Origin: Selaginella moellendorffii
Lineage: Eukaryota; Plantae; Lycopodiophyta
Reading direction: 5' to 3'
Assembly (NCBI RefSeq): GCF_000143415.4
Contig: NW_003314281.1
Span: 918,833 to 982,832 of the forward strand
DNA length: 64,000 bases
The position numbers and the translations under genes are program-made. Under the pieces are notes generated by a model that saw nothing but the letters and a program-made list of their open reading frames with translations, did not search any database and was not told the origin of the DNA. This document shows, in pieces, positions 1,239 to 60,655 of the stretch; positions within the stretch are counted from its first letter, which is position 1; the number at the start of each line of letters is the position of its first letter.

Positions 1239-1375
1239 AAACTTTTTGTTACCAGTGCCCAGCTGGAGGCATGGTGCCAAGCTGTAAAACATCAATTCTT
1301 CATAGTAACCACATGTTGCTAGCAAGTTACTTCACTGGTTCCATCTTTCTCGTAGCATCAAAGAGGAGCATAGAA

Positions 1376-2446
1376 ATGGAGGCCACTTTGATCTCCAAAT
1401 TCTCCACTGTCACGCACTTCGAGCTTCCGCAGCTTCCCAACAACATCCCATTCGCCTACCACCCGCAATCCGCGACGATCAGTCCCCAGATCGACGAGTG
1501 GATGCTTCGCAAGATGAAGATCACCGATCGGAGTGTGAGGAAGAAGATGATCCACTCCAAGATCGGTTTGTACGCCTGTATGATGCATCCCAATGCCGAG
1601 AGGGAGAAGCTCGTCCTGGCCGGTAAAAATCTCTGGGCCCTCCTACTCATCGACGATTTGCTCGAATCCAGTAGTAAGGAAGAGATGCCTCGGCTCAACA
1701 CCACCATCACCAACCTTGGCAGTGGAAATTCCAGGGATGGAGCTATCCGGAATCCTGTGCTGCTTCTGTATAAAGAAGTTCTGGGAGAGCTTCGAGCTGC
1801 CATGGAGCCACCTTTGCTGGACCGCTACTTGCACTGCCTGGCAGCTTCACTCGAAGGCGTCCGGAAGCAAGTCCACCACCGAACCAGAAAGAGCGTCCCT
1901 GAACCGGAAGAATATAAGCTTACCCGTCGTGCCAATGGATTCATGGACATCCTCGGGGGCATCATGACCGAGTTCTGTATGGGAATCCGCCTCAACCAAG
2001 CTCAAATCCAGTCTCCAACCTTCCGGGAGCTCCTCAACTCTGTGTCTGATTACGTCATTCTCGTCAATGACCTGCTGTCCTTCCGGAAGGAGTTTTACGG
2101 TGGCGATTATCACCACAACTGGATCTCGGTTCTCTCGTACCATGGCCCCACGGGGATCCGCTTTCAGGATGTGATTGACCAGCTGTGTGAGATGATCCAA
2201 GCAGAAGAGCACTCTATCCTGGCCTTGCAGAAGAAGATTGCCGACGAAGAAGGTTGCGACTCGGAGCTGACGAAATTCGCAAGTGAGCTTGCAATGGTTG
2301 CTTCCGGGAGCCTCGTGTGGTCGTATCTCTCTGGCCGCTACCATGGCTATGATAATCCACTGATCACTGGGGAGATTTTCAGTGGAACATGGCTGCTGCA
2401 TCCCGTGGCCACCGTCGTCTTCCCATCCATCAAGGCTCGCCCCTGA
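1376..2446 (+). CDS. MTPSL: Microbial terpene synthase-like protein (MTPSL), class I terpene cyclase, intronless, ~356 aa
   Basis: Single alpha-domain size; DDLLE (DDxxD/E), effector Arg in RRANG, NDLLSFRKE (NSE/DTE), WSYLSGRY (WxxxxxRY); start taken at MEATLISK. Confidence 0.92.
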   Translation: MEATLISKFSTVTHFELPQLPNNIPFAYHPQSATISPQIDEWMLRKMKITDRSVRKKMIHSKIGLYACMMHPNAEREKLVLAGKNLWALLLIDDLLESSSKEEMPRLNTTITNLGSGNSRDGAIRNPVLLLYKEVLGELRAAMEPPLLDRYLHCLAASLEGVRKQVHHRTRKSVPEPEEYKLTRRANGFMDILGGIMTEFCMGIRLNQAQIQSPTFRELLNSVSDYVILVNDLLSFRKEFYGGDYHHNWISVLSYHGPTGIRFQDVIDQLCEMIQAEEHSILALQKKIADEEGCDSELTKFASELAMVASGSLVWSYLSGRYHGYDNPLITGEIFSGTWLLHPVATVVFPSIKARP

Positions 2447-19283: not shown

Positions 19284-21585
19284 ATGGCGGCGGCGAAGCG
19301 AGGGGCGCGCTCCAAGGCGGCGGCGGTGGCGATCGAGGCGCCGGCGCCAAAGAAGATCCGGATCAATCCCGTGGTAAGGCGCTACCCTATCGATGTGCAG
19401 GGTAGCTCGCGCGTGCTCCAGAACGCGATCGGCGAGATATTTCGGCGCAGCAATGCCAGCGGCCTCAGCTTCGAGGAGCTCTACAGGTAAAACTGGGATT
19501 GTCGTTTGATCGATCGGGCGATCTTTCCATGGCAGGCATGCCTTTAATCTTTGCCAGGGCAATCACGCCGCTAAGCTCTACCAGATGTTTCGCGAAGAGC
19601 TCATCCGGAACCTCGCGGTCTACCGGGATGGCGTGTTCGCGGCCGCCGACACTGGATCCATGTTTGAGGTCTTGGACGAGAAGTGGCTGGAATTCTCGCG
19701 AGCGCTCCAGCTGATCAGGGCTTTGCTGAGTTGCATGGACAGGACCTATGTGATCCGGTACAGGGAGAGGTCCGTCTATGACTTGGGGCTGGAGCTATGG
19801 AAGGTGGAGGTGGTGAGCTCGCCAAAGCTGCAAGCCGCGCTCACGGCTTTTCTCCTGGGCGAGATCCACAAGGAGAGGTCCGGGGAGATGATTGACAGGA
19901 GCAAGATGAGGAGGGCTGTGCAAATGCTCATCGAGCTCGACTACAAGATATATCTTCTCGTGGTGGAGGAACCATTCATCTCGGCTTCCAAGGATTTCTA
20001 CTCGATCGAGAGCCAGCAGCTGCTGGCTTGCGGGGACTGCTCCGCGATGCTCAAGAGGGTGGAGCGACGACTCAAGGAGGAAAGCATGAGAGTGTCGCGG
20101 TACCTCTCGGAGAAAACTGGGCCAAAGATCAGCAGGGTGGTGGTGGATATCTTCGTCGGGAAGAACATAAAGCAGCTGGTGGATATGGAGAACACGGGGC
20201 TCGAATTCATGCTTTCACAGGACAGGTTGGACGACTTGGCACGCATGTACGAGTTTTTGCAACACTGGGAAGAAGGAGGGAAAGAAATTCTAGATGGTTT
20301 GACGAGGCATATCAAAGCAAACGGTGCGCAGCTCGTCCAGGATCCCGAGCGGCAGAAGGATCCGGTGGCTTTCATCCAGCTGCTGCTAAGTTTCAAGGAG
20401 AAGTACGACGCGATAGTGAGCTCTTCGTTCAAGAGAAACAAGGCCGTGGCCGCGGGTTTGGAGGTGGCTTTCGCAGAGGTCGTCAACTTAAACCGCAGGC
20501 TACCGGAGTTTCTTTCGTTGTTCCTGGATAACAAGCTTAGGCAAGGTGGCAAATCGGATAGTGGTGGCTCGGACGATCCGGAAGCCTTCATGGACAAGGC
20601 GATGCTCATCTTCCGGTACATCAACGAAAAGGACATGTTTGAGAAGTACTACAAGCACCACCTCGCGAAACGGCTGCTCCTGTCCAAGTTCGCCGAGGAC
20701 GAGCTCGAGAGGAGCCTCATCCTCAAGATCAAGACGGTGTGCGGCTACCAGTTCACGAGCAAGATCGAGACCATGCTCAAGGACATGAGGACCTCGGAGG
20801 ATCTCATGCAGCGGTTTAGGAACATGCAGGCAAACATCAACGCGGCGGTGAACATCAACGTCCAGGTGCTCACCACCGGATCCTGGCCGGCGTACGCGTC
20901 GTCCTCGCAGTGCATACTCCCGAGAGAGGTCCACGGGCTGTGCGAGAGGTTCAAGACGTTCTACCTCATGCAGCACAGGGGCCGGCGGCTAACTTGGCAA
21001 GGAAACCTCGGCTCAGCGGACTTGAAGCTCACCATCGACGACACCACGAAGACGCTGAGCTGCTCGACGTACCAGATGTGCATCCTCATGCTCTTCAACG
21101 ATTCCGACCGGCTGAGCTACAAGGAGATCAAGGACGCGACGGGGATCCAGCAGGCGTCGGAGCTCAAGAGAAACTTACAGTCGCTGGCGCTGGTCCGGGG
21201 CAAGAACGTCCTCCGCAAGGAGCCCATGAGCAAGGAGATTGGCGAGACGGACGTGTTCGTGTTCAACGAGGCGTTCACGAGCAAGCTGGCCAAGATCAAG
21301 ATCTGCACGGTGGCGGCGCAGAAGGAGACTGGCGAGGAGAACTCCCGGACGAGGGAGACGATTGAGAGCGACCGGAACCCGCAGATCGAGGCGGCCATTG
21401 TCCGGGTGATGAAGTCGAGGCAGCGGATGGAGCACAACAATCTGGTGAGCGAGGTGATTGCGCAGCTCCAGTCGCGATTCACTCCAAACCCGGCGGTGAT
21501 CAAGAAGCGAATCGAGGCACTTATCGAGAGAGATTACCTCGAGCGGGACAGAGATGACAGGAGAACGTACTGCTACTTGGCATGA
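19284..21585 (+). CDS. Divergent Cullin-3-like protein (exon 19284-19486, 49-nt intron, exon 19536-21585)
   Basis: NASGLSFEELYR|HAFNLCQG, EKDMFEKYYKHHLAKRLL, VLTTGSWP, AAIVRVMKSR, IKKRIEALIERDYL; same intron position as the neighbouring CUL3. Confidence 0.92.
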
Positions 21586-23141: not shown

Positions 23142-25085
23142 TTAGCACGATCCAGAGATGATTCCATTTGCCAGGAGAACATAGCTCGATGCTCGCGAAT
23201 CCAGGCTTTCGATCACCCCATGGCCGAGCTTCGCAGGGATCTCCCGGCTTGCCAGGCACGTCGATTCCAAGACCCCCGGCTGGAATGGCATCGTGTCTAT
23301 GAGCTCGCGAGCGTCTCTCCATCGCCCAGCTCGGGCCAGGAGATCCACAATGCAACAGTAGTGCTGCTTGGTCGGGGTAAAGCCGTGATCGAAGATCATG
23401 GACTGGAACAAGCTCCATGAATCGCGGAGAGTTCCTCCGTGGCTCGCGGCGGCCATTAGAGATAAGAAGCACCCTTGGTCGGGATCTTCCGCGGCCACTC
23501 TCATTGATTGAAGAAAATGGAGACCCTGGTGTGAGTGGCCAAGGCGCGAATATGCCGCCACCATGGTGGTCCATGACACAATGTCGCGGTCGGGCATCCT
23601 CTGGAAGAGACTCCACGCCTGTACAAGATGCCCCGACCGGGCATATGCGTAGAGCATCACGTTTGTGGTCGCCGTATTCCGGGCAGGAATCGTATCGTAA
23701 AAGAGTTGCGTTTGTCGCAAGCTGCCAAAATCGACATATGCTGTTAGCAGTGCGTTGAAGGACACCGTACTTCTCTCGGGCATCTTGGAAAAGATACGTT
23801 TTGATTCCTTTAAATGACCTTCCTGGGCATATGCTGCAAGCATTGTTGTGTAGGTAATGAGGTTTTTCGTTGGTAGGGAATCAAACCGGCATTTGGCTTC
23901 CTCGAGCTTGCCGGATATTCCAAGGATAAAAAGGTCCGTATTGGAGGAGACTAGGTCGAGCTCTGGAATGAAATTTAGAGTCTCTTTGGCGTCGAGTATT
24001 TGCCCATTCTGGGCGAATGCTGTAAGCATTGCGTTCCACGAGACGAGATCTCGCTGGGGCATGCTGTGAAAGATCTCTTGCGCCCAATCCACTCCTCCAT
24101 TGTGAGCCAGCGCTGTGATCATCGCGTTGCAAAGGATGATATCCCTCGCGGGAGCGTCGTCATAGATGATCTTGGCGAGATCCAGGCGCCCTATCTGGGA
24201 ATAGGCGGTGAGCATTGTCGTCCAGGCGATTAGGTCTCGCTCAGGCATCGTGTGGAAGATCTGGCACGCCAGATCGATGTTCTTGCTCTCGGCGAGCGCT
24301 TCCAGCAGGATCGTCCATGCGACGCGGTCTCTCTCTGGCATCTGATCGAACAGGAGCTTCGCCACAGCAAGATTCCCGCTCTTGGCGTAGCCGGAGAGCA
24401 TCGCGGTGAAAGAGAAGAGATTGTGCTCCGGCATCGCGGCGAAGATCGTTCTTGCGGCGTCCGCTAGGCCGGATTGTGCGTAGAACACCAGGATCGTGCT
24501 CCAAGAAACTAGGGTTCTTAGCGGCATTGCGGAAAAGAGTTCTTGGATCGATGAAAGATCGCCACTCCGGGAGAATGCGGCGAGCATCGCGTTCCAGGAC
24601 ACGAGATCGCGCTGCGGCATCGCTTCAAACACGCGCATCGCGTCCCTCAATCGGTTCTTGTGCGCGTAGGCAACGAGCATCGTGGTCCAGCTTCTCAAAT
24701 CCCAGCCAGGGAATCTATCGAATAGCTCTCGCGCGTGATCTAGATCCCCGGCCTGCGCGTAGGCGTCCAGCATCGTGTTCCAGGCGCCCAGATCGGCGAA
24801 TGGCGTGATGGAATCGAAGACTTGCTTGGCGTTCATCAGGCATCCATTTCTTGCCAGGGCCGAGAGGATGAGGTACCAGGAGAAGGGATTTCTTGCGTCG
24901 CCCAGGCCGATGAAGATCTCTACCGCCTCCCTGACGTTTCCAGATCTGCCACACGCATCGATTCGTTTGTTCGCGAAGAACACATCGATCTTCTTCTCGG
25001 CCGCTGGCAGGGACAATCTTTGGCAGCATTGGGAGGTCATTGGCAACAACGATCGTTCGTTCTTGATCAGGTTGAAGGAGGTCAT
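23142..25085 (-). CDS. PLS-class PPR protein dominated by tandem 31-aa short motifs, truncated E
   Basis: Many MPxRDLVSWNAMLxA repeats; HYCCIVDLLARAG; SSYVLLAN; start may be 25085 or ~25040. Confidence 0.9.
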   Translation of the reverse strand: MTSFNLIKNERSLLPMTSQCCQRLSLPAAEKKIDVFFANKRIDACGRSGNVREAVEIFIGLGDARNPFSWYLILSALARNGCLMNAKQVFDSITPFADLGAWNTMLDAYAQAGDLDHARELFDRFPGWDLRSWTTMLVAYAHKNRLRDAMRVFEAMPQRDLVSWNAMLAAFSRSGDLSSIQELFSAMPLRTLVSWSTILVFYAQSGLADAARTIFAAMPEHNLFSFTAMLSGYAKSGNLAVAKLLFDQMPERDRVAWTILLEALAESKNIDLACQIFHTMPERDLIAWTTMLTAYSQIGRLDLAKIIYDDAPARDIILCNAMITALAHNGGVDWAQEIFHSMPQRDLVSWNAMLTAFAQNGQILDAKETLNFIPELDLVSSNTDLFILGISGKLEEAKCRFDSLPTKNLITYTTMLAAYAQEGHLKESKRIFSKMPERSTVSFNALLTAYVDFGSLRQTQLFYDTIPARNTATTNVMLYAYARSGHLVQAWSLFQRMPDRDIVSWTTMVAAYSRLGHSHQGLHFLQSMRVAAEDPDQGCFLSLMAAASHGGTLRDSWSLFQSMIFDHGFTPTKQHYCCIVDLLARAGRWRDARELIDTMPFQPGVLESTCLASREIPAKLGHGVIESLDSRASSYVLLANGIISGSC

Positions 25086-25153: not shown

Positions 25154-26971
25154 ATGGAGAGGAAAGAATGCCTAGATCTCATCGCATCCGCAAGAACCCT
25201 AGCCGCGGCAAAGAAGATCCACGCCTCGATCCAGGGGTTCCTGGACAGCCGCAAGAACGATCTCTTCCTCGCCAACAAGCTAGTGGAGATGTATGGCAAA
25301 TGCGGTAGCACCGAGCACGCCCGGCAGATCTTCGATCTCATGAGCGCCAGGGACGTTTTCTCGTGGGATATGATGCTCTGCGCCTACGCTCGCAATGGAG
25401 ACGTCAATTCGGCCGCGCAATTGTTCCTGGCCATGCCGCGGCAGCATCTCATCTCCTGGAACATCATGCTCTCGGCGTATTCCCAGACCGGGCATCTGGA
25501 TCTCGCCGGACGCGTCTTCGATGCGATGCCGCTGCGCGATCTCGTCTCCTGGAATGCGATGCTCACTGCGCTCTCACACGTCGGCGCGATCGATCGCACG
25601 ATGACGCTATTCGAGGCTATGCCGGATTGGAATCTCCTCTCCTGGAACGTTGTCCTTTCCGCATTTGCCGAGCTGGGGCATCTTGAATCGGCCAAGAGGG
25701 TTTTTGATGCGATGGGCGAGAGGAGCTTGGTGTCCTGGACCGCGATGCTGCAGTGCTACGCGAGATCGGGCAATCTGGGTGATGCGAGGCGGATGTTTGC
25801 TGCGATGCCGGAGAGAGATCTTGTCTCTGCGACAGCGATGATCGTGGCACTCGTCCAGAGCGGTGATCCTACCGCGGCAAAGGTGATGTTTGAGGAAATG
25901 CCGACGAGCGATCTCATCTCCTGGACTGCGATGCTGGTGGGATTCGCGCAGTGTGGCCGGATTGACGACGCGAGAGCTACGTTCGAGGCGATGCCAGTGA
26001 GGAATCTCGTGTCGTGGACGGCGATGGTGGCGGTGTATGCGCAGAAGGGGAAGATGGATGAAGCGATGGCAATCTTCTCCGCGATGCCACAACGGGATCT
26101 CATCTGCTGGAACTCAATGCTCGCGGCGTATGCCCAGAATGGGCAATTGGAGGAGGCAAAGATGCTGTTCGACACGGTTCCACAGCGGGATCTTGTCTCG
26201 TGGACGGCGATCTTGGTGGCTTATGCTCAGCACGGACATATCGAAGAAGCAAAGCGATTGTTTGATGCGATGCCACAGCAGGAGGTCGGGTGCTGGAACG
26301 CGATGCTGGCAGGGTATGCCCAGAATGGGCATTTGGAGGAGGTGGTGTTCTTTTTTGGGACAATGCCGCAGAGGGACTTGATCTCCTGGACGACTGTTCT
26401 ATCGGCGTACTCGCAGCACGGCCGCCAGCATGATGCTCGACGAGTATTTGATTCGATGCTGGAGCCGGACAGAGTTTCGTGGTCGGCCATCCTCGCTGCT
26501 TACGCCAATAACGGCGATTCCTCGCGGGCGATCCAAGTCTTTCAGGAGATGAAGATGGTGGAGCTCGCGGACGAGACGTGCTTCGTGTCCGCGTTTCTGG
26601 CTTGCAGCCACAAAGGCAAAGTTGAGCTTGGGAGGAGCTACTTTGGATCGATGAGCGTGGATTTTGGAGTAAAGCCGAGCAAGCAACACTACTGCTGTAT
26701 GCTTGATCTTCTAGGACGCGCTGGACGCTTGGACGATGCGCAGGAGCTCATCTACACCATGCCGTTTGTGCCGAGTGCTCTGGACTGGACGTGCGTGCTT
26801 GCCGGGTGTCGGAGTCACTCGGATTCCAAGCATGGAGCTCAGGCAGCCAAGTCCATTGTGGAGATCGATCCAAAACATGGTTCTGGCTACGTGCTGCTGG
26901 CAAACTTGGTGAGGAACTCTGCGAAGAAACCGGCAACAAAAACCAGTCCTGCGTGCTCCAAAGCTTCATGA
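25154..26971 (+). CDS. PLS-class PPR protein dominated by tandem 31-aa short motifs, truncated E
   Basis: MPxRDLVSWTAML repeats; HYCCMLDLLGRAG; GYVLLAN. Confidence 0.92.
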   Translation: MERKECLDLIASARTLAAAKKIHASIQGFLDSRKNDLFLANKLVEMYGKCGSTEHARQIFDLMSARDVFSWDMMLCAYARNGDVNSAAQLFLAMPRQHLISWNIMLSAYSQTGHLDLAGRVFDAMPLRDLVSWNAMLTALSHVGAIDRTMTLFEAMPDWNLLSWNVVLSAFAELGHLESAKRVFDAMGERSLVSWTAMLQCYARSGNLGDARRMFAAMPERDLVSATAMIVALVQSGDPTAAKVMFEEMPTSDLISWTAMLVGFAQCGRIDDARATFEAMPVRNLVSWTAMVAVYAQKGKMDEAMAIFSAMPQRDLICWNSMLAAYAQNGQLEEAKMLFDTVPQRDLVSWTAILVAYAQHGHIEEAKRLFDAMPQQEVGCWNAMLAGYAQNGHLEEVVFFFGTMPQRDLISWTTVLSAYSQHGRQHDARRVFDSMLEPDRVSWSAILAAYANNGDSSRAIQVFQEMKMVELADETCFVSAFLACSHKGKVELGRSYFGSMSVDFGVKPSKQHYCCMLDLLGRAGRLDDAQELIYTMPFVPSALDWTCVLAGCRSHSDSKHGAQAAKSIVEIDPKHGSGYVLLANLVRNSAKKPATKTSPACSKAS

Positions 26972-27789
26972 CGAAATGCCCGGTGGAACTGACGACTTTC
27001 GCTCTACTATTACAGATTCAAAGGAGGGAGCACTGAAGAGCCAAATGTCTGGTAAGCTTTGCATTGGTGTGGACTCGTTTTCTTCCTTTTTTTTTCCTTC
27101 TTTTGACTAGTTTGGTTTGTGCAGGGAGGGGTCCAGGCGGATTTGACAAGTAACTGGTTGAGCTGGATACGTCAGCTGCAAACGAAAGCTCTCGAGATTC
27201 ATCAGCAACTTTAACGTGAGTGAATCAATATGTTTTTGTCTTTGCACAGGGAAAGGGTCTCACTCGTCTTGCAGATGCGCGGGGCCTAAAGTTTGACTCG
27301 TAGTTCTCGTGCCAGTCGTTTTCTCCGGTTGTTGCCAAGTTTTGTTTCGAAGTGGATCTAACTTTCGCTTGCTCCAGGTGCTTTTGCGGCTTTCCCGATT
27401 GGCTGAGAGCATCGGAGTACCATTTCTGGCTAGCTTCCAAGGTAGAGAGATTTCTGTCGCAGACGAAGCGGTAGCTCCCAGATTTCTGGAAGACTGCCTG
27501 ACTGGCTTCAGTCAGTCAGTCGACCATCAAAGCTCCCGTTACGATCTAGCTGCGTTTTCTTTTTCGTTTCCTCGTAGGTAGATAGATTTCGCAATTGGTC
27601 GGTTCGAACTTACCAATGCGTCCCAGCTGCAGGGAAATCAATCGCGCAGAGCTTAAAAAACTCGCACGGGTATTGAAAAAACTGGGCAGGCACTCACTCC
27701 ATCATGTGATGCTCCCAAGAACACAGACAACTAAAGAAGAAAAGGTTTCATTGACTAAGGCGTGGACTGGACCGCTGACTAAGGTTGAC

Positions 27790-28924
27790 TCAACATTTAC
27801 ACGACTGGGAAGGCCTCGGATCGACCAGGCAGAGGAAGCCCATGATCGCGAACAGCGCCAGGATGATCAGGAAGAGAGATCCCAGCGTCCCAATGATGGA
27901 GGTGAAGAATCCCTTCATAGCCTCGGCAGCGGCCTCGGAGGTGCTCGAGGAAGAAGAGGAGGAGCTGAGTGATGCTAGGAGGACCATGACGACGATCACC
28001 AGTCCGATGAGCACTGCCAGATCCATCGAGTCGTTTCTTCCACCGCCGCCGCAGCAAGGATCCGGGTCGTACTGGCTGTAGCAGGGAGGATCGCTGGCGT
28101 CGCAGCCAGTGACGATGATGGTGGGCGGACAGAATGGGATCTCCGGAGGACAGTCATGGTGGTGGTGGTGGTGGTCGTGGTCGTGATCGTGATCGTGATC
28201 GTGGTGGTGGTGGTGGTGCTCGTGGTCCTGCTCGTTGTCACAGCACTTGGGCTCCTTTGGGGCTGGCGGCGGTGGGGATGGCGTTGGCGGTGGAGATTTG
28301 TGGTGGTGGTGGTGCTCGTTGTCACAGCAGCTATGGTGGGGCTTGGGCTCCTTTGGAGCTGGCGGTGGTGGCGGTGGCGTTGGCGGCGGCGATTTGTGGT
28401 GGTGGTGGTGGTGGCACGGGCACTTGCAGTGGTGGTGGCCGTGGCGGTGGTCGCAGCACTTGGGCGATGGAGGGGTGGGGGCGGCGGGCGGGGGATCCTT
28501 GGGCTTGGGCTTCTCCTTCTCCTTCTCCTTTTCTTTCTCTGGCGGCGGCGGGAGATCCTCGATGGAGAGGAAGACAAGCTTCTTCTTCTTCTTGAATCGC
28601 TCCACCACCGCGAGGATGTCCTCGAGCGTTACCTCGCCGGTGACGACGATCTTGCCGCTCTTGGGGGCGTACTCCACCTCCTTGACACCTACAGCATCGA
28701 TCTATCCATCATCCAAGAGAGAAGCAAGGAATGGAGTTAGAACCTGCGGTGTGCTTGAGGATCTCCAGGACCTTCTCTCGGCACTTCTTGCAAGAGCTAC
28801 ACAGATTGAGTGTGACCTGGGACAGAGAGAAGAGATAAGGGAAGCCACAGATCCCTCTGGATAGAGCATTTCCACCATAGCCAGAGAAACTGGAGATTCA
28901 GTAGTAGTACCTTACCTTCTTCAT
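27790..28924 (-). CDS. HMA-domain protein with Pro/His/Cys-rich region and two predicted C-terminal TM helices
   Basis: Exons 28916-28924, 28744-28816, 27790-28688: MKK|VTLNLCSSCKKCREK...|GVKEVEY..KIVVTGEV; poly-His and (HD)n tracts; hydrophobic LAVLIGLVIVVMVLLASL and FFTSIIGTLGSLFLIILALFAIMGFLCLV; ends SCKC. Confidence 0.82.
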
Positions 28925-29375
28925 GGCGATCTTGTGGCTGCTTGGCTTGATTCTTCCTCCACTCACATTCACAGTACCACCATTCTATCTCTCCCGACAG
29001 TGGCCAGCGATGATAGACTAGAAGAACGGATCAAGACACTCACGCCTCTTAGGAGTGTAAAAAGAGGGGTAGATTTTTGCGAGCGTATAAACAAAAAGGA
29101 GAGAATTAGAGAGAAGTGTCCTTCCTTCCCTGTAGAGCGTAGGTGAGTTGTCGGTGGCAAAAAAACTGAACGCTGGGACTAGTTGACAAATGACTCCTGG
29201 AAGGTGGTCCCATTATAAAAATTAACCTAATATTAACTATGAATAAATTGTATATAAATAAGGTTTGATGATTATTATAACTTATTTAAGTTGCATTATC
29301 ACTAATTAATATATCCTTTCCACTAACTCAGGAAATTATTTGTCATTTTATTCAAACATGGTTTATCAGTTTCAA

Positions 29376-29609: not shown

Positions 29610-31964
29610 CTAATCTTTCTTGTCTGCCAGCTTTGGAGCTGGCTCCTTGTACATCTGCACAAGTTCTTTCACCACGCGCTTCACGCTCCCACCGTTCTTG
29701 ATCATCAGCTTGCGGTTCATCTCCGTATCATAGAACCCCTGCAAGGAGAAAAATTAGAATCCCGAATGCAAGCTTTGCAAAGGAAAATCTGCGCTGCGCT
29801 TACCATCTCTTGGAGCTCCTCCAAGATGGGATCCCACTCGGCCGCAGCAACGAGATCATCCAGCGTACGGTGGAAGTCATTGTTGTTCTTCTCCAGGAGC
29901 TCGTATATCAGCTCTTTCTTGTTGGTGAAACCCATCGTCTGGAAGAATACCGCCGCCTTCTCCTTCTGGCTCTCCAGAGAGGCCTCCGGAGTAACTGGAG
30001 TAACTGGAGCAACTGGAGTCACCCTCTTCTCCGCAGAGGCCAGTGGAGTAGCAGGAACCTCCGCCGCTTCCAGCTCGGGCTCGGGCTCTGGCATCGGTGG
30101 CATCGGTGGCGAAGATGCCGAAGCTTCCTCGCTTTTCGGCATCTCCACCAGAGAGAACCCGTCATCGACTTCATCCGCCTTGAAGTCCTCGCCTTCAAAG
30201 CTCTTCTCACTCGGCACAGCCTCGCCCACCATCACTTCCACCTCCACGCTCGTCGCTTCGTCATCGAAGTCTACCACGACGACAGGACTCTCCTCCCCAG
30301 CAGGCTTTTCGGCCTTCACCTCGACATCGCTCTCAGACGCGTTAGGCGTGACCTGCAAGCCAAGAAAGATCGAATAATCAGCCATTGACCACATCGAAAC
30401 TTCAAGTGCTCTCTAGAACATGTCCAGTACCTGGATCAGTGCCCAAACTCTGTGTCCAAACTTAACACCGTAAGGTGTTACAAGCCTCCAGTACGATGCA
30501 TATCGTCCTGCTCGAGCCGGGGCAACGAGATCAACCGCTACCTCAACTTCGGCATCTGGAAGAACGCTAGCACCTTCGGTCTGTTTAAAACCGAAACGAC
30601 TGAATTAGAACACTCGAGAAAGATCAAAGAGAGAAACATACCTGCAGCGACACAGCCGACACTGTTCCCATCTCGTCGCCGCCTACACGCACCAGTCTAG
30701 TGTCGGGTGCCCAGGCAACTTTGCCGCTGTTACGAAGCCTCCATATCTTCACAAAGCGAGTATGGGGGCTAACTTCAGTCCCGTCAGGGATACTGACGTC
30801 GCAGACGAAGCGGCCATCCGGTTTGGCGTACGCCACATCCATCGGACGGCCAAACGGAGAGAACGGAGAGAATGGTCTTGGAGCAAACTCTGTTTCCGAG
30901 TGACGATGATAGTCACCCGCACGTCCCCATGCAGAGCGGCAGCGGTTCGGCCCAAACGCAGCTGGGCATCTTCCCTGCTTTAAAGAAATTTTTTTAAGAA
31001 CACACTGAAACGAAGTGGAGCTTTTACTACTCACCACTCGCCCGGGAGGAACGTAGTGATGACGATGAATTGGTTTGTCGTAGCGAGTATAATCCAGCTG
31101 ACCGCCTTTCGGCAGGTTGTTGAAACAAGTCACGCACAAATCATAGTCGTGCTTGCTGAAAAAAACCATTCTCACATAAGAAACCATAGAGACAGAGAAA
31201 GAGGAAGTTAATTACCTGGTCGACTTGAAGCGTGGACCAACAATTGGTGACGTGCCACAGCCATCACACTGGACGTTCTGGTGGAAGACGTTCTCCATTC
31301 CAGAACGAGGAGCTTCGCTACGATCACCAGCCGGAGGAGGCACAGCATCAGGCGCAGCAGCAGACTTCTCGGCAGCAGAGGTGGTGGTCGACGACTCAGC
31401 GCGGATCTTTCCGGAAAGACCTCGCATAAGGTCCGCCACCGTCACCATGTGGGGCTTGAGGAAGGGATGCACAGCTTCCTTGAGCGTCTCGGCATCAAAC
31501 GCCTTGAGAGCCGCCTCCAAGATTGGTTTGATATCCCCAACAAACGCTCCTTCGCTGCTGCTGGAGCTGCTCCCAAGGGGAACCTCCAGGCGGACGTCCA
31601 GCCTGAGAGGATTTATTCCCTGGAGCACGCAAGCGTCCTCCAACTCCTGGTCATTCGCCATAGTAATCACATCGTTGTCCTTGTCGACGTAAGTTATCAC
31701 CAGCTTTGAAGCAGTAGGGATTCCAAAGCTGCCAGGCAAAAAAAAATTTTTTAGTTCAAGCATACAAAAAATCGATTCTTTCTACCTGTCACAGATTTTC
31801 GAGTGAAGCTCCGCAAAAGAAATCGCCGGAGCTCCGTTTGATGATGCCGGAACAGTGAGCCTCCGCAGAGACTCTTCGTATCTTATCTGAAAAGAAGAAG
31901 ACGAAGCGAAGATAAGAAGATTCTTTTCAGGGATTCACGTCCATACCTTGATCACGAAAGCCAT
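29610..31964 (-). CDS. NBR1: Selective autophagy receptor NBR1 (PB1, ZZ, FW, 2x UBA, AIM)
   Basis: MAFVIK|IRYEESLRR, TYVDKDNDVITM (PB1), VQCDGCGTSPIVGPRFKS...DYDLCVTC (ZZ), DVSIPDGT..FVKIWRLRNSG (FW), EWDPILEELQEM (AIM + UBA). Confidence 0.94.
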
Positions 31965-33886: not shown

Positions 33887-36103
33887 CTACCAGTAATCAC
33901 CGCACGAACAAGAGCCTCTCTGGAAGATATGAAACCGATGCGAGTCCCGGACAAGAACCTTTCGGTGTAACATCTTCGAAACCAGCTTGAAAAACGAGTG
34001 GCAGTCGGGACAGATTCGGAGGTTCTTGACAATGTGTAGCGTCGCTCCTGCGTCGGACGTCAACAGTCCCAGCCCCAGAGCCATCCTCTCGCTGTGAAAG
34101 AGCAGCAACTCGGGCTTCACCTCCTCGTTCACGTCCACCAAAACTTCTTTCGTGTCGGGCTCGTATCCGGCATGAGAAAGCTGTTCGTGGACTTCCTGGA
34201 GCCGAGCACGAATCTCCTGGTTCAGAGGGTGAGCAGTATCTCCACACACGAACTCGTGAATTCTTCGCTGTGCCTCGATCATACTCTTCCCGGGTGGCTT
34301 TGCGAGACCTCTCTGTTTGATCATCTTCTTCACCTCCGCTACGTCTGCCCACTTTCCAGCCTTTGCGTACATGTTTCCCATCAGAAGGTAAGGCCCCGAG
34401 TCGGGAGGATTCAGCTCGGTTATCCGCTTGTAAGCCCGAGCTCCGATCTTCAAGTCCCCGTAGACTTTGCAAGCACTCAGCAAGATCGTCCAAGTAACCA
34501 CGTCGGGAGAATACGGCATGGTGCGGACGAGCTCCTCGGCTTCTCTTAACCGGCCAACCCGTCCCAGAAGATCGATCATGCAAGTGTAGTGGGGCTGAAG
34601 CGGAACGATCCAGTGGTCCTCTCTCATGGCTCGAAAGTAGAGCAAGCCTTCGTCCGGCAGGCCCGAGTGGCTGCAAGCATTGAAGATTGCTGTGAAAGTC
34701 ACGTCGTCTGGAATCACTCCCTCGCAGTTCATCCGCTGGTAAGCTTCGAGACGGTACTGCGACTGCCCCGGCTGAGAGTAAGCGGACATGAGCGACGTCC
34801 AGGTGAAGACGTTCTTCAGTCCACAGTCGTTAAACACGGCTCTGGCTTCGTGAGCGCTGCCACACTTGGCGTACATGTTGACAAGCGCAGTATTGTAAGC
34901 AACGTCGGTCGGCTGGTCACCTCCTTTCACCTTCTTGTGAATCTCTTTCCCTTCGGTGAGAGCTCCCAGCTTTGAGCAGGCGTCGAGAACACTCGTGTAA
35001 GTCCACAAGTTTGGCTCGAGATTCCTGCCTTCCATCTCGATGTAGAGACTTATAGCCTTGCTCCCATCGTCGTACTTCGCAAAAACCGCGATCATGTTGT
35101 TGTAAGACGCGAGGTCCTTGTAACGTATCCCATCAAAGACCCACTTTGCGCTGGCGATCCTCCCAAACCTTCCATACATCCCAACGAGCGCGTTGGAGCA
35201 CACTGGAGTTCGTCTCTCGTGATTTCCCAGCTTGACATGGATGGCTTCTCCCTCTCGGATAGTCGGGCACACGGCTAGAGCAGCGGCGTAAGCGTAGATG
35301 TCCGGCATTATTCCCTCGGACAGCATTTTCTTGTAGAGCTCGTAGGCCTCGACGTGCTTGGCAGTGTGTGTGTAAGCCTGGATCATCGACGTATAGGATA
35401 TCAAGTTCTTGGGCTCCATCTTGTCGAACACCCCGGCCGCAAACTTGAAGCTCCCACACTTTGCGTACATGTGGATGAGGCTGTTTTGGACGACGAGATC
35501 AGTACCAAAGCCTTGAGCAATCGCGTGCCTATGAATCTCCTTACCATCCTCGAGGTAATCATCTCCAAGATGAGCGCACGACTTTAGAACCGTCACGTAG
35601 GTGGCTTGGTTCTGCTGGAGCTCCTCGTTGATCGACTTCTTGAAGAGCTGGAGAGCCTTCTTGTGGAGATCGTTCTCCTGGTAAGCTCCCATCATGATCG
35701 CGTACGAGTACTCGTTCTTCTCCGCGATCTCGGAGAAGGCCGCCACCGCGTCGTCGATGCTCTTGCATCGGCCATAGGCGCGCACCAGGCAATTCCCCAA
35801 AAACGTCTCCTTCTCCTGCTCCAGATTGGCGTCGATGATCCGCTCGTGAGTCATCTTGACGTAGCCCAGCCCAAACTCGCCCCAGCAGCGCTTGAGCCGG
35901 TCGGCGTACTCGGTAGAGCCGATGCGCAGCGGCGGCGGTGGTTTGAGCTGATCTAGCTCCTTCTGTGCCTTCCATTTACCTCGCTTCTCAGATGTGCGGC
36001 CGCCCTGGAGAATGCTGCTGCTGTGGATCTCCCTGGCATCGATCGCGACATGGAATCGAATGCGCCGCCTCCAAATGCGCGCCATTCTCCCCCAAAGCCT
36101 CAT
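33887..36103 (-). CDS. PLS-E-DYW PPR protein (putative C-to-U RNA editing factor)
   Basis: PG box (KPPGKSMIE), HEFVCGD, HSERMA, KNLRICPDCH, CSCGDYW; ATG chosen at 36103 (upstream ATGs overlap the neighbouring gene). Confidence 0.93.
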   Translation of the reverse strand: MRLWGRMARIWRRRIRFHVAIDAREIHSSSILQGGRTSEKRGKWKAQKELDQLKPPPPLRIGSTEYADRLKRCWGEFGLGYVKMTHERIIDANLEQEKETFLGNCLVRAYGRCKSIDDAVAAFSEIAEKNEYSYAIMMGAYQENDLHKKALQLFKKSINEELQQNQATYVTVLKSCAHLGDDYLEDGKEIHRHAIAQGFGTDLVVQNSLIHMYAKCGSFKFAAGVFDKMEPKNLISYTSMIQAYTHTAKHVEAYELYKKMLSEGIMPDIYAYAAALAVCPTIREGEAIHVKLGNHERRTPVCSNALVGMYGRFGRIASAKWVFDGIRYKDLASYNNMIAVFAKYDDGSKAISLYIEMEGRNLEPNLWTYTSVLDACSKLGALTEGKEIHKKVKGGDQPTDVAYNTALVNMYAKCGSAHEARAVFNDCGLKNVFTWTSLMSAYSQPGQSQYRLEAYQRMNCEGVIPDDVTFTAIFNACSHSGLPDEGLLYFRAMREDHWIVPLQPHYTCMIDLLGRVGRLREAEELVRTMPYSPDVVTWTILLSACKVYGDLKIGARAYKRITELNPPDSGPYLLMGNMYAKAGKWADVAEVKKMIKQRGLAKPPGKSMIEAQRRIHEFVCGDTAHPLNQEIRARLQEVHEQLSHAGYEPDTKEVLVDVNEEVKPELLLFHSERMALGLGLLTSDAGATLHIVKNLRICPDCHSFFKLVSKMLHRKVLVRDSHRFHIFQRGSCSCGDYW

Positions 36104-36188
36104 GAACCCTAAAACCCCGCATAAACCCTGGAATATGCTAATCACGTGAGCCCTAAAAGGTGTGAGAGCCCTAAGAACAGAGCATTTC

Positions 36189-36548
36189 ATGGCGTTCGCC
36201 ATCGCGTGCCCGGCGCAGCTCAAATCGGTGCTGGGCGGTCCCGATTCCGGCAGGATTCGCTCGCGTTCACCCGCATTTGGCATTAATCATTCCATTTTCG
36301 CGCAAGTCAGTCGGGGGAGCTTGAAATTTCGGGGTGTTGTGCCATTGGATCACAGGCAAGTGAAAAAATTCTCAGCGACGAACAGCTCTGATGCGAGCTC
36401 CACGGAGGACGAATCAAAACCTACCAGCGATTACAAGAGCGGGCCTCCAATTGCAACGATAGTGGCTGGGATTTTGGTGTTTGTTCTAGTTCTGTGGATG
36501 ATTGGTTCGCTCGTGACTTGGCTTGTAACACTCTTGGTTCATGGTTGA
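36189..36548 (+). CDS. Small protein with transit-peptide-like N-terminus and C-terminal TM segment
   Basis: MAFAIACPAQLKS..., acidic linker, GPPIATIVAGILVFVLVLWMIGSLVTWLVTLLV. Confidence 0.7.
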   Translation: MAFAIACPAQLKSVLGGPDSGRIRSRSPAFGINHSIFAQVSRGSLKFRGVVPLDHRQVKKFSATNSSDASSTEDESKPTSDYKSGPPIATIVAGILVFVLVLWMIGSLVTWLVTLLVHG

Positions 36549-58909: not shown

Positions 58910-60655
58910 ATGCCGGGAGTGTTGATCGATGATATGCCCTTCTCGCTGGATCATCCCGCCTCCACATCGCCATTCTTGGACAATCTCTCGCCGCTCTCAT
59001 CGCCCTCTTCCCCCTTCCACCAGATGCATCACCACCACCACCACCACCTCCACCAGCAAAGCAGCAGTCTTTTGGAATCCATAATGGCCACCGTCTCTTC
59101 TCCCACCTCGTCCTCTCCGCCGTCCTCTCCGGTGGACAGTCCGCGCGGCACCTCGCACGACGCCGCGCTGTCTACCGTGCTGCACCGCTTCCTACCGTCC
59201 AACAACAGCGATGAAGCGACCTGGAGCGCCGAGGACGTCTACTCTTGCGACGAGTTCCGGATGTTCGAGTTCAAGGTCCGGCGGTGTATGCGCGGCCGGA
59301 GCCACGACTGGACCGAGTGTCCGTTCGCTCATCCGGGCGAGAAGGCTCGGCGGAGAGATCCGCGGCGGTTTCACTACTCGGGCACTGCTTGCCCGGACTT
59401 CCGCAAGGGGAGCTGCAAGAACGGCGACGCCTGCGAGCTGGCGCACGGCGTGTTCGAGTGCTGGCTGCATCCCGCGCGGTACCGCACGCAGCCGTGCAAG
59501 GATGGCCGGAGCTGCAAGAGGAGAGTGTGCTTCTTTGCGCACACGTCCGAGCAGCTCCGCCTTCTTCCCCAGGTCTCGCAGGCCATGAGCAATTCGCCTT
59601 CTTCCACTACGCCCTCTTCCTCCTCGCCACCCTCTTCTTCCTCCTCAAACGCGCTCTTCTCGTCCTCGCCGTGTTCTTCGTCGCCATCGCTGCCCTCTTC
59701 TTTCTGCGCCACCACCTCGCCGGATTCCTTCTCCTCCGCCCCCTTCGTGGGCTCTCCCTGCTCGCCGCGAAGATCTTCCGCCTCGGCCGCGGCATCGCTC
59801 CTCCGGAGCTTCAGCGACAAACCATTCGCGGGCTCGTCGCCGTCGCTTGGCTTGGATTCCTTCGAGCCCTCCAGCGCCATGTCGACGTCGTACTGCTGCT
59901 GCCACCAGGGCCCGCAACAGCAGTCGTCTCGGGCAGTGGCGGCATGCAGCGCGGCACGCCTCATCTCCTCCCCGACCTCCACTCTCGTCGGCCTCGCGCA
60001 GTCTCCACCGCCGCTCTCCCCGCCACTCTCGCCGTCGCAGTCGCCGCCCATGTCGCCCTCGGCGGTACCGCGGCGTCACCTCGACACCCGCCGCCTCGGC
60101 TTCGCGTCCGCGCCGTCCAGCCCCGCCACCAGCCACCATCCGCTCCACAATAAGGCCATGTGCGATCTCGTCACCGCGCTCCAGCAGCTCGAGCTCCAGA
60201 AGTCGGTTACCGTGCCGCACGTCGCGGGCGGTATGCAGCACGGTACCGCCGGGTGGGTCCAGTGCAGCCCGCAGTACAGCAGCGGCCCCAGCCCGCTCCG
60301 GCCGGGGGCGAGCGCGGGGAGCTGGGCACCGCCGTGCGCCGTACCGCGCGGTACGAGCGTCAGCCTGCCGTGTACCCCGACCAAGCCGACGAGGTGGGAC
60401 ACAATGTGGGAGATGGAGATGGGCGAGGAGGATCTTTTGGAGGAGCAGGAGATGCTATCGATGCCGGTGCCAAGGGTGGAATCGGGCAGGGATTTGCGAG
60501 CAAAGATCTATGGGAGGCTGGCGACCAAGGTGATTGGAAGTGGTGGAAATGGTGGTGGTGGTGGCGAGAGTAGCGGACTGGGGATCGGGTACGAGGCTGG
60601 AATTGGAGAGCCAAGCCCGGATCTGAATTGGGTGAACGATCTGGTGACCGAGTGA
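58910..60655 (+). CDS. RR-TZF tandem CCCH zinc-finger protein, intronless
   Basis: [35 protein letters not shown]; [19 protein letters not shown]; [16 protein letters not shown]; RVESGRDLR; [10 protein letters not shown]. Confidence 0.95.

Follow-up and report, generated by a model that had tools for sequence, protein, structure and literature searches.

We analysed a window of 64,000 nucleotides (nt) from the genome of the lycophyte Selaginella moellendorffii (contig NW_003314281.1, positions 918,833 to 982,832; all coordinates below are positions within this window) and focused on a gene located on the minus strand at 27790-28924. The gene has three exons and ∼326 codons. Its predicted product combines an N-terminus resembling domains of the heavy-metal-associated (HMA) type with a long Pro-, His- and Cys-rich tract and two strongly hydrophobic helices close to the C-terminus. 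The sequence features listed for this locus in an original prediction, made from the letters alone, were all present on the minus strand.

Gene model and transcripts

Exon 1 (28924-28916) consists of the codons ATG AAG AAG, encoding M-K-K at the start of HMA strand beta-1, and is followed by intron 1 (28915-28817; 99 nt, GT..AG). Exon 2 (28816-28744; 73 nt) codes for the N-terminal half of an HMA-like domain, in which C-S-S-C-K-K-C would make up the metal-binding loop and the beginning of helix 1. Intron 2 (28743-28689; 55 nt, GT..AG) is a phase 1 intron splitting a Gly codon before V-K-E. Exon 3 (28688-27790) holds 298 codons read from 28686 and ends with the stop codon TGA at 27792-27790. 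The predicted protein is therefore 3 + 24 + 1 (the split Gly codon) + 298 = 326 residues long; residues encoded by exon 3 are numbered below from its first complete codon.

Transcript evidence was taken from four public runs (X1, X2, X4 and X18), coming from four studies with three organism labels and mapped to 27300-29300. All four are available in the form of contigs, with a library type that is a guess; still, the exact skipping of 28689-28743 and 28817-28915, with minus-strand GT..AG ends, indicates that the contigs derive from spliced RNA. The intron 2 joint (28686>28742, cut +2) was present in all four runs and the intron 1 joint (28814>28914, cut +2) in three of them (X2, X4 and X18). 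The three-exon structure given in the original prediction was thus recovered from transcripts at both introns, and the depth of the contigs was substantial in several studies. The gene is real and expressed.

In the X1 contig intron 1 is retained while intron 2 is spliced out. This form is a non-productive isoform or a pre-mRNA, since a stop codon is reached after 8 codons.

A condition under which the predicted membrane segments would have been lost is that transcripts end, or are spliced, upstream of the part of the gene encoding them. We observed neither: contigs of the four runs contained no joint of any type within 27790-28147, the interval encoding a Cys-Pro segment, both hydrophobic helices and the C-terminal tail. 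Record 4 of X1 spans 27404-28938, record 14 of X4 covers 27732-28147 and record 6 of X18 covers 27815-28147; the helix-coding 3′ part stays in the mRNA.

The 5′ untranslated region (UTR; 28925-29083) carries two tiny upstream open reading frames (M-V-V-L-stop and M-stop), and an in-frame stop codon is situated 20 codons upstream of the ATG. Contigs reach 29074-29083, with record 12 of X2 ending at 29074 (adapter letters follow beyond this point) and record 7 of X18 extending to 29083. The 3′ UTR has a minimum extent of 27732-27789, given by the start of X4 record 14 at 27732; X1 record 4 starts at 27404, and X2 record 8 runs into a neighbouring gene for a pentatricopeptide repeat (PPR) protein.

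The HMA-like N-terminus

The presence of an HMA domain was assessed exon by exon. In a Pfam search with residues 1-33 of exon 3 the top family was PF00403 (HMA), matched over profile positions 26-61 of 62 with 14.9 bits (E-value 0.037). The gathering score of PF00403 is 24.8 bits over ∼60 residues, and the score falls below this cut-off because the query is half a domain. Exon 2 alone gave no HMA row in Pfam.

Both halves were also compared with a profile built from the HMA domains of Escherichia coli CopA (two domains) and ZntA. In hhalign, exon-2 residues 7-21 aligned with columns 12-26 of this profile, placing C-K-K-C over the CxxC motif (P = 6.6e-4), and exon-3 residues 10-28 aligned with columns 40-58 (P = 0.012). 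Aligned jointly in MAFFT, the pieces from the two exons together tile the HMA domain over its full length, with the split Gly at the position of the conserved G-V turn. The second half of the domain, at the start of exon 3 (28561-28688), is assigned from PF00403, hhalign and AlphaFold2 as beta2-beta3-alpha2-beta4 and includes a patch of five Lys residues. The AlphaFold2 model, made for exon 3 alone, has strands at residues 3-7 and 12-16, a helix at 21-32 and a strand at 39-41, with mean predicted local distance difference test (pLDDT) values of 62-76 in 10-residue blocks; as modelled, this strand-strand-helix-strand order is the second half of a ferredoxin-like fold.

Searches against the PDB added nothing to this picture. 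The two exon pieces produced chance sequence matches only (TATA-binding protein, E-value 0.19; lactate dehydrogenase, E-value 1.8). Foldseek with the exon-3 model returned nothing at E-value ≤ 0.001, as could be expected for a model made of a half-domain and disordered sequence.

The metal-binding loop has an additional Cys three places before the first aligned Cys of CxxC. We consider the HMA identity of the N-terminus likely, although it stays below the family threshold. The HMA domain of the original prediction is best described as HMA-like, with PF00403 the top family in the correct register and both pieces tiling the corresponding halves of the CopA/ZntA domain.

The Pro-, His- and Cys-rich tract

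The composition of exon 3 is strongly biased, with 48 Pro (16%), 35 His (12%) and 18 Cys (6%). Downstream of the HMA-like domain lies a Pro/Lys/Glu linker (28462-28551, minus strand) with P4, (EK)n and PKPK motifs and a Pro-rich stretch, predicted by AlphaFold2 to be disordered. The linker is followed by the His/Cys-rich tract (28162-28461, minus strand), in which a CC..CKCPC-H6 cluster precedes two 32-residue tandem units and the run H-E-H6-(DH)5-H6. Each tandem unit has the form K-S-P-P-P-T-P ... A-P-K-E-P-K ... C-C-D-N-E ... H5. Tandem Repeats Finder reported a period of 96 nt, 2.2 copies and 83% matches; the repeat cores (28246-28314 and 28342-28410, 69 nt each) are 91% identical. The Pro-rich repeats span residues 46-175 of exon 3, and AlphaFold2 predicts disorder over residues 45-218.

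One contig joint in this region ‘goes back 96’ positions and could be read as an extra repeat copy. We rejected this reading and ascribe the joint to a mapping effect of the masked repeat (28352-28544): in X1 record 4 there are 203 nt between record positions 939 and 1143, which is the spacing of window positions 28341 and 28545.

Hydrophobic helices and topology

Two hydrophobic segments are situated near the C-terminus. The first is preceded by a spacer, G4-R-N-D-S-M-D, and covers residues 223-241 of exon 3 (spacer and helix 1 at 27964-28050, minus strand); contigs of X1, X2, X4 and X18 cover this stretch with no joint. A short, Ser-rich, acidic interhelix loop (27913-27963, minus strand) separates it from helix 2 (27823-27912, minus strand; residues 259-288). 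The Kyte-Doolittle means in 19-residue windows are 2.96 (residues 223-241) and 2.93 (residues 270-288), well over the usual threshold of 1.6. AlphaFold2, again for exon 3 alone, places helices at residues 219-241 and 253-288; their pLDDT averages 58-83 over blocks of 10 residues (65-83 for helix 2). The two strongly hydrophobic helices anticipated from the sequence were borne out by hydropathy and by the structure model alike. In Pfam the hydrophobic end gave matches to ODV-E18, Yip1, TrbC and others, all of them below the cut-offs; we rejected these as generic two-helix similarity.

The protein begins with M-K-K followed directly by an HMA strand, having neither a signal peptide nor a hydrophobic leader, and ten polar residues follow helix 2. 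The two helices hold one Cys in total, and the Cys clusters lie outside them. Given the lack of a signal peptide and the position of the hydrophobic pair at the C-terminus, the protein would most likely insert as a hairpin, leaving its two ends as well as the HMA domain and the His/Cys tract on the cytosolic side.

Alternatively, the protein might face the cell wall or apoplast, its SPPP tract being hydroxylated and glycosylated like that of an extensin and its hydrophobic end serving as an anchor or as a signal similar to that for glycosylphosphatidylinositol (GPI) attachment. The S-P-P-P motifs and Pro-rich repeats do resemble motifs of hydroxyproline-rich glycoproteins. Yet the chain opens with an HMA strand instead of a signal peptide, ten polar residues after helix 2 and the presence of two helices misfit a GPI signal, and free Cys and His clusters suit the reducing cytosol. 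We consider an apoplast-facing protein highly improbable; as a class, GPI-anchored and extensin-like proteins were rejected on account of the missing N-terminal leader and the ten polar residues beyond helix 2.

An internal HIPP-like motif and the C-terminal tail

Between the His/Cys-rich tract and the spacer lies a Cys-Pro segment (28051-28161, minus strand) with four spaced Cys, ending in Y-S-Q-Y-D-P-D-P-C-C. It contains the pattern [FY]S..[DN]P..C (28054-28080). In isoprenylated plant metalloproteins of Arabidopsis and rice the sequence FSDENPNA is highly conserved directly before the CaaX box (PMC1929074). Compared with FSDENPNA-C, the Selaginella sequence Y-S-Q-Y-D-P-D-P-C has S, P and C in common, with Y in place of F and D twice in place of N, and it is located after a Pro-rich region as in HIPPs. 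The motif (residues 203-211 of exon 3) is, however, internal, 87 residues before the end of the protein. The pattern appeared in 0.08% of shuffles of exon 3 (frequency 0.0008), a figure that flatters the motif, as the pattern was chosen after seeing the sequence.

The C-terminal tail (27790-27822, minus strand) reads D-P-R-P-S-Q-S-C-K-C followed by the stop codon. Among its last four residues, S-C-K-C, Cys occupies positions -3 and -1 but not -4, so that the protein ends in CXC and not in CaaX.

In the original prediction YSQYDPDPC-C was taken for a vestige of the HIPP CaaX terminus. The motif is present, resembles FSDENPNA and is infrequent in shuffled sequence. Descent from a CaaX end is plausible, but the pattern was defined post hoc and no intermediate relative was at hand.

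The same region admits another origin, in a putative Selaginella HMA family having a Pro/Lys linker and a poly-cysteine tail. The hairpin would then be an insertion or extension within this family and not an addition to a CaaX end, and the family's tail would correspond to the terminal CKC or to the CC after D-P-D-P. An HMA-like domain, a K-rich patch, a Pro/Lys/Glu linker and an end made of Cys are all found here. Still, phmmer with exon 3 as the query (which included only 46 HMA residues) returned no S. moellendorffii protein at E-value ≤ 0.001, and we regard the cysteine-tail origin as possible but less likely than not.

Relatives, annotation and coding signal

A phmmer search with exon 3 against 1.84 billion representative proteins produced four matches, all via His runs, and no true relative. 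The matches were to two RcnA-like permeases and two short low-complexity proteins and were rejected as compositional. A word search with the whole of exon 3 gave a single match, a His-rich RcnA permease; word searches with residues 176-298 and 1-46 gave nothing. Feature searches of the ESM Atlas with the C-terminal part and with the HMA half returned no usable match, and tblastn with the same two parts revealed no second copy in the window.

The absence of relatives holds for annotated proteomes. Transcriptome-derived proteins of other lycophytes are seemingly not in the collection, as even the contigs holding the HMA gene gave no match. On the other hand, the proteome of S. moellendorffii is represented: two open reading frames (ORFs) of the window, 1271-2443 and 58910-60652, are exact entries of the collection and cluster with S. 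moellendorffii proteins (from a 2.3-Mb NCBI scaffold and its haplotype partner). As exon 3 finds in this collection neither itself nor an allele or paralogue, the gene appears to be missing from public annotation, judging from these protein-collection searches.

Lack of relatives could also mean that the gene is young and confined to its lineage and gives a read-through or orphan product of little or no function, that its hydrophobic end was once non-coding and that the protein is unstable or not made. The apparent absence of the gene from public annotation and the retention of intron 1 in one run agree with this possibility. The in-frame GC content at third codon positions (GC3) is 0.91 in the HMA part, 0.77 in the middle part and 0.75 in the hydrophobic part, whose other two frames give 0.49 and 0.46. 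The helix-coding part thus has nearly the value of the middle part and clearly exceeds the off-frame values, which speaks against an orphan product. No frameshift or stop was seen in contigs of the four runs, several of which have substantial depth.

Over 654 nt of coding pieces, X18 shows 3 differences from the window. One difference is synonymous (T>T) and two change the amino acid (M>V and I>V), a proportion that fits an orphan product; both changes are conservative, I>V being in helix 2 and M>V just upstream, in the interhelix loop. Over 170 nt of 5′ UTR there are 14 differences between X18 and the window, of which 10 are substitutions and 4 are indels; this is ∼8% compared with <1% in the coding sequence, which is therefore much more conserved. 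Together these data make an orphan or read-through product quite unlikely.

Comparison with known protein families

HIPPs form a large vascular-plant family tied to metal tolerance, plasmodesmata and disease susceptibility, in which the lipid anchor controls location in the cell. HIPPs are confined to vascular plants; the most basal genome from which they have been reported is that of Selaginella. Plant HMA proteins are grouped as HPPs, HIPPs and P1B-ATPases, and gene counts given for S. moellendorffii are 5 HIPPs and 4 HPPs (PMC12835825; PMC10459601). Pro-rich motifs are common in HIPPs (PMC10459601; PMC12835825), while transmembrane or extracellular domains are lacking in intracellular HMA proteins of the HPP/HIPP type (PMC12835825).

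Like the HIPPs AtHIPP26 and rice Pi21/OsHIPP05, the protein described here has an N-terminal HMA-like domain with CxxC and a Pro-rich region after it (16% Pro, between the HMA-like domain and the C-terminus). C-terminal membrane association, as predicted, would be another common trait, and the internal motif [FY]-S-x-x-[DN]-P-x-x-C may be compared with FSDENPNA-C(aaX) of HIPPs. Unlike HIPPs, it has no CaaX box, carries two helices after the motif and a far denser His/Cys tract, and has no detectable sequence relative. As the defining CaaX end is absent, the protein is not a HIPP; an HMA-like N-terminus combined with the lack of CaaX and of ATPase domains makes it operationally an HPP. It shares these traits with ATX1, CCH and NaKR1, whereas the HPPs described so far are soluble and have no transmembrane hairpin (PMC12835825).

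The view that the architecture is not that of an annotated family agrees with the lack of a true relative among the 1.84 billion representatives and with reviews describing HPPs and HIPPs as proteins that lack transmembrane domains (PMC12835825). Literature searches for HIPPs with transmembrane domains returned nothing relevant.

In having (DH)n and H6 runs beside a membrane segment, the protein is similar to metal transporters with His-rich cytosolic loops (RcnA, ZIP and CDF/MTP); it differs from them in having two helices only and no transporter core, and the likeness is compositional. In the databases the His tract in fact resembles nothing but the cytosolic His-rich loops of RcnA-type Ni/Co efflux permeases (P0001, P0002 and P0005), a similarity of chemistry and not of homology. 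CxC and CC clusters combined with a C-terminal membrane segment are reminiscent of CYSTM proteins, other tail-anchored Cys-rich stress proteins and metallothioneins. In the present case, however, there are two helices instead of one and the Cys lie outside of them; CYSTM was rejected for this location of the Cys clusters and because no Pfam match to CYSTM or metallothionein was found.

Three more candidates were considered and rejected. A P1B-ATPase (6-8 helices plus actuator, phosphorylation and nucleotide-binding domains) or a fragment of one does not agree with ∼326 residues, two helices and the absence of a Pfam match to E1-E2 ATPase or hydrolase. A substrate of Rab-type CXC geranylgeranylation would have the terminal CKC seen here, but no GTPase domain is present. 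An oleosin-like hairpin was the third.

A putative membrane-tethered metal protein

We find it rather probable that this real, apparently unannotated three-exon gene encodes a membrane-tethered, cytosol-facing metal buffer or chaperone of HIPP/HPP descent. In such a protein a divergent HMA domain (ferredoxin-like, with CxxC) would be followed by ∼170 disordered residues dense in His, Cys and Pro. Two transmembrane helices with a short Ser-rich loop would form the membrane anchor, and a 10-residue tail ending in CKC would follow. The hairpin would replace the prenyl group of HIPPs as the tether; S-acylation may be added at the CC next to the membrane and at the terminal CKC. Descent would be from the plant HIPP/HPP lineage, either from a HIPP with a CaaX end or from a Selaginella branch with cysteine tails. 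The proposed origin of the anchor, its topology and the binding of metal are inferred from features of the predicted protein.

Several observations weigh against this interpretation. With no relative at hand, evidence of conservation does not extend beyond near-identical transcripts, in which two of the three coding differences of X18 change an amino acid. The HMA match is below the Pfam cut-off (14.9 versus 24.8 bits), half-domains being the only queries, and a Ser stands two places before the first aligned Cys, where Met or Leu is usual (M/L-x-C-x-x-C). Low-complexity sequence rich in His or Pro can arise and persist with no metal function, and motifs of the SPPP type are commoner in secreted cell-wall proteins.

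The deviation from M/L-x-C-x-x-C in the metal loop is also relevant for a different role, that of a membrane-anchored platform for protein interactions (a scaffold, a susceptibility factor or a decoy), in which the richness in His and Cys would be incidental. Many HIPP functions are independent of CxxC, and Pro-rich motifs mediate protein binding (PMC10459601; PMC12835825). Here, nevertheless, CxxC is kept and a third Cys is added; 35 His, 18 Cys and the (DH)5H6 run far exceed what a linker needs; and no effector system is known in lycophytes for this protein. An interaction platform with no metal function seems rather unlikely.

A more far-reaching version of the metal-protein interpretation can be put forward tentatively. 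The gene may represent a lycophyte-restricted class of integral-membrane HMA proteins, in which a hairpin replaces the prenyl anchor and >50 His/Cys ligands make a high-capacity sink or sensor for Zn, Ni or Cu. The architecture is so far known from one species.

If this version is correct, the gene would offer a natural experiment showing the essential role of HIPP prenylation to be that of a membrane tether. A protein-anchored lycophyte relative would show that the membrane tether is swappable and would be a simple means of telling effects of tethering from those specific to the prenyl group. For diversification of the HIPP family at the base of vascular plants it would be a further data point. 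As a compact candidate metal-binding module anchored to the membrane, the His/Cys tract has a possible use in metal-tolerance or phytoremediation assays. With regard to annotation, the case would indicate that the current annotation of the S. moellendorffii reference genome overlooks low-complexity His-rich genes.

Neighbouring genes

A plus-strand neighbour is convergent with the HMA gene. Contigs of X1, X4 and X18 have a plus-strand intron at 27327-27376 (50 nt, GT..AG) spliced out. From X2, a contig of 2291 nt extends unspliced from inside the PPR ORF at 25154-26971 as far as the HMA gene's 3′ part; the 3′ ends of the two genes thus seem to overlap or abut.

There are three long single-exon PPR ORFs in the window: 23142-25085 (minus strand), 25154-26971 (plus strand) and 33887-36283 (minus strand), the third with an E motif and a DYW deaminase domain. 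None of the three had an exact entry in the protein collection, with first in-frame ATGs tried as starts. Just upstream of the HMA gene, the minus-strand ORF 29717-30394 (225 codons) encodes an acidic, Pro/Val-rich sequence with no Pfam match and no exact collection entry, and probably belongs to a larger gene as one of its exons.

The plus-strand ORF 19585-21585 (666 codons) has full Cullin and Cullin_Nedd8 Pfam domains and is CUL3-like. Together, the PPR, PPR-E-DYW and cullin genes are indicative of a land plant. The ORF 1271-2443 (plus strand), one of the two exact S. moellendorffii entries mentioned above, encodes a terpene synthase (‘(3S,6E)-nerolidol synthase-like’), and its cluster contains five other near-identical Selaginella sequences of 356-415 residues.

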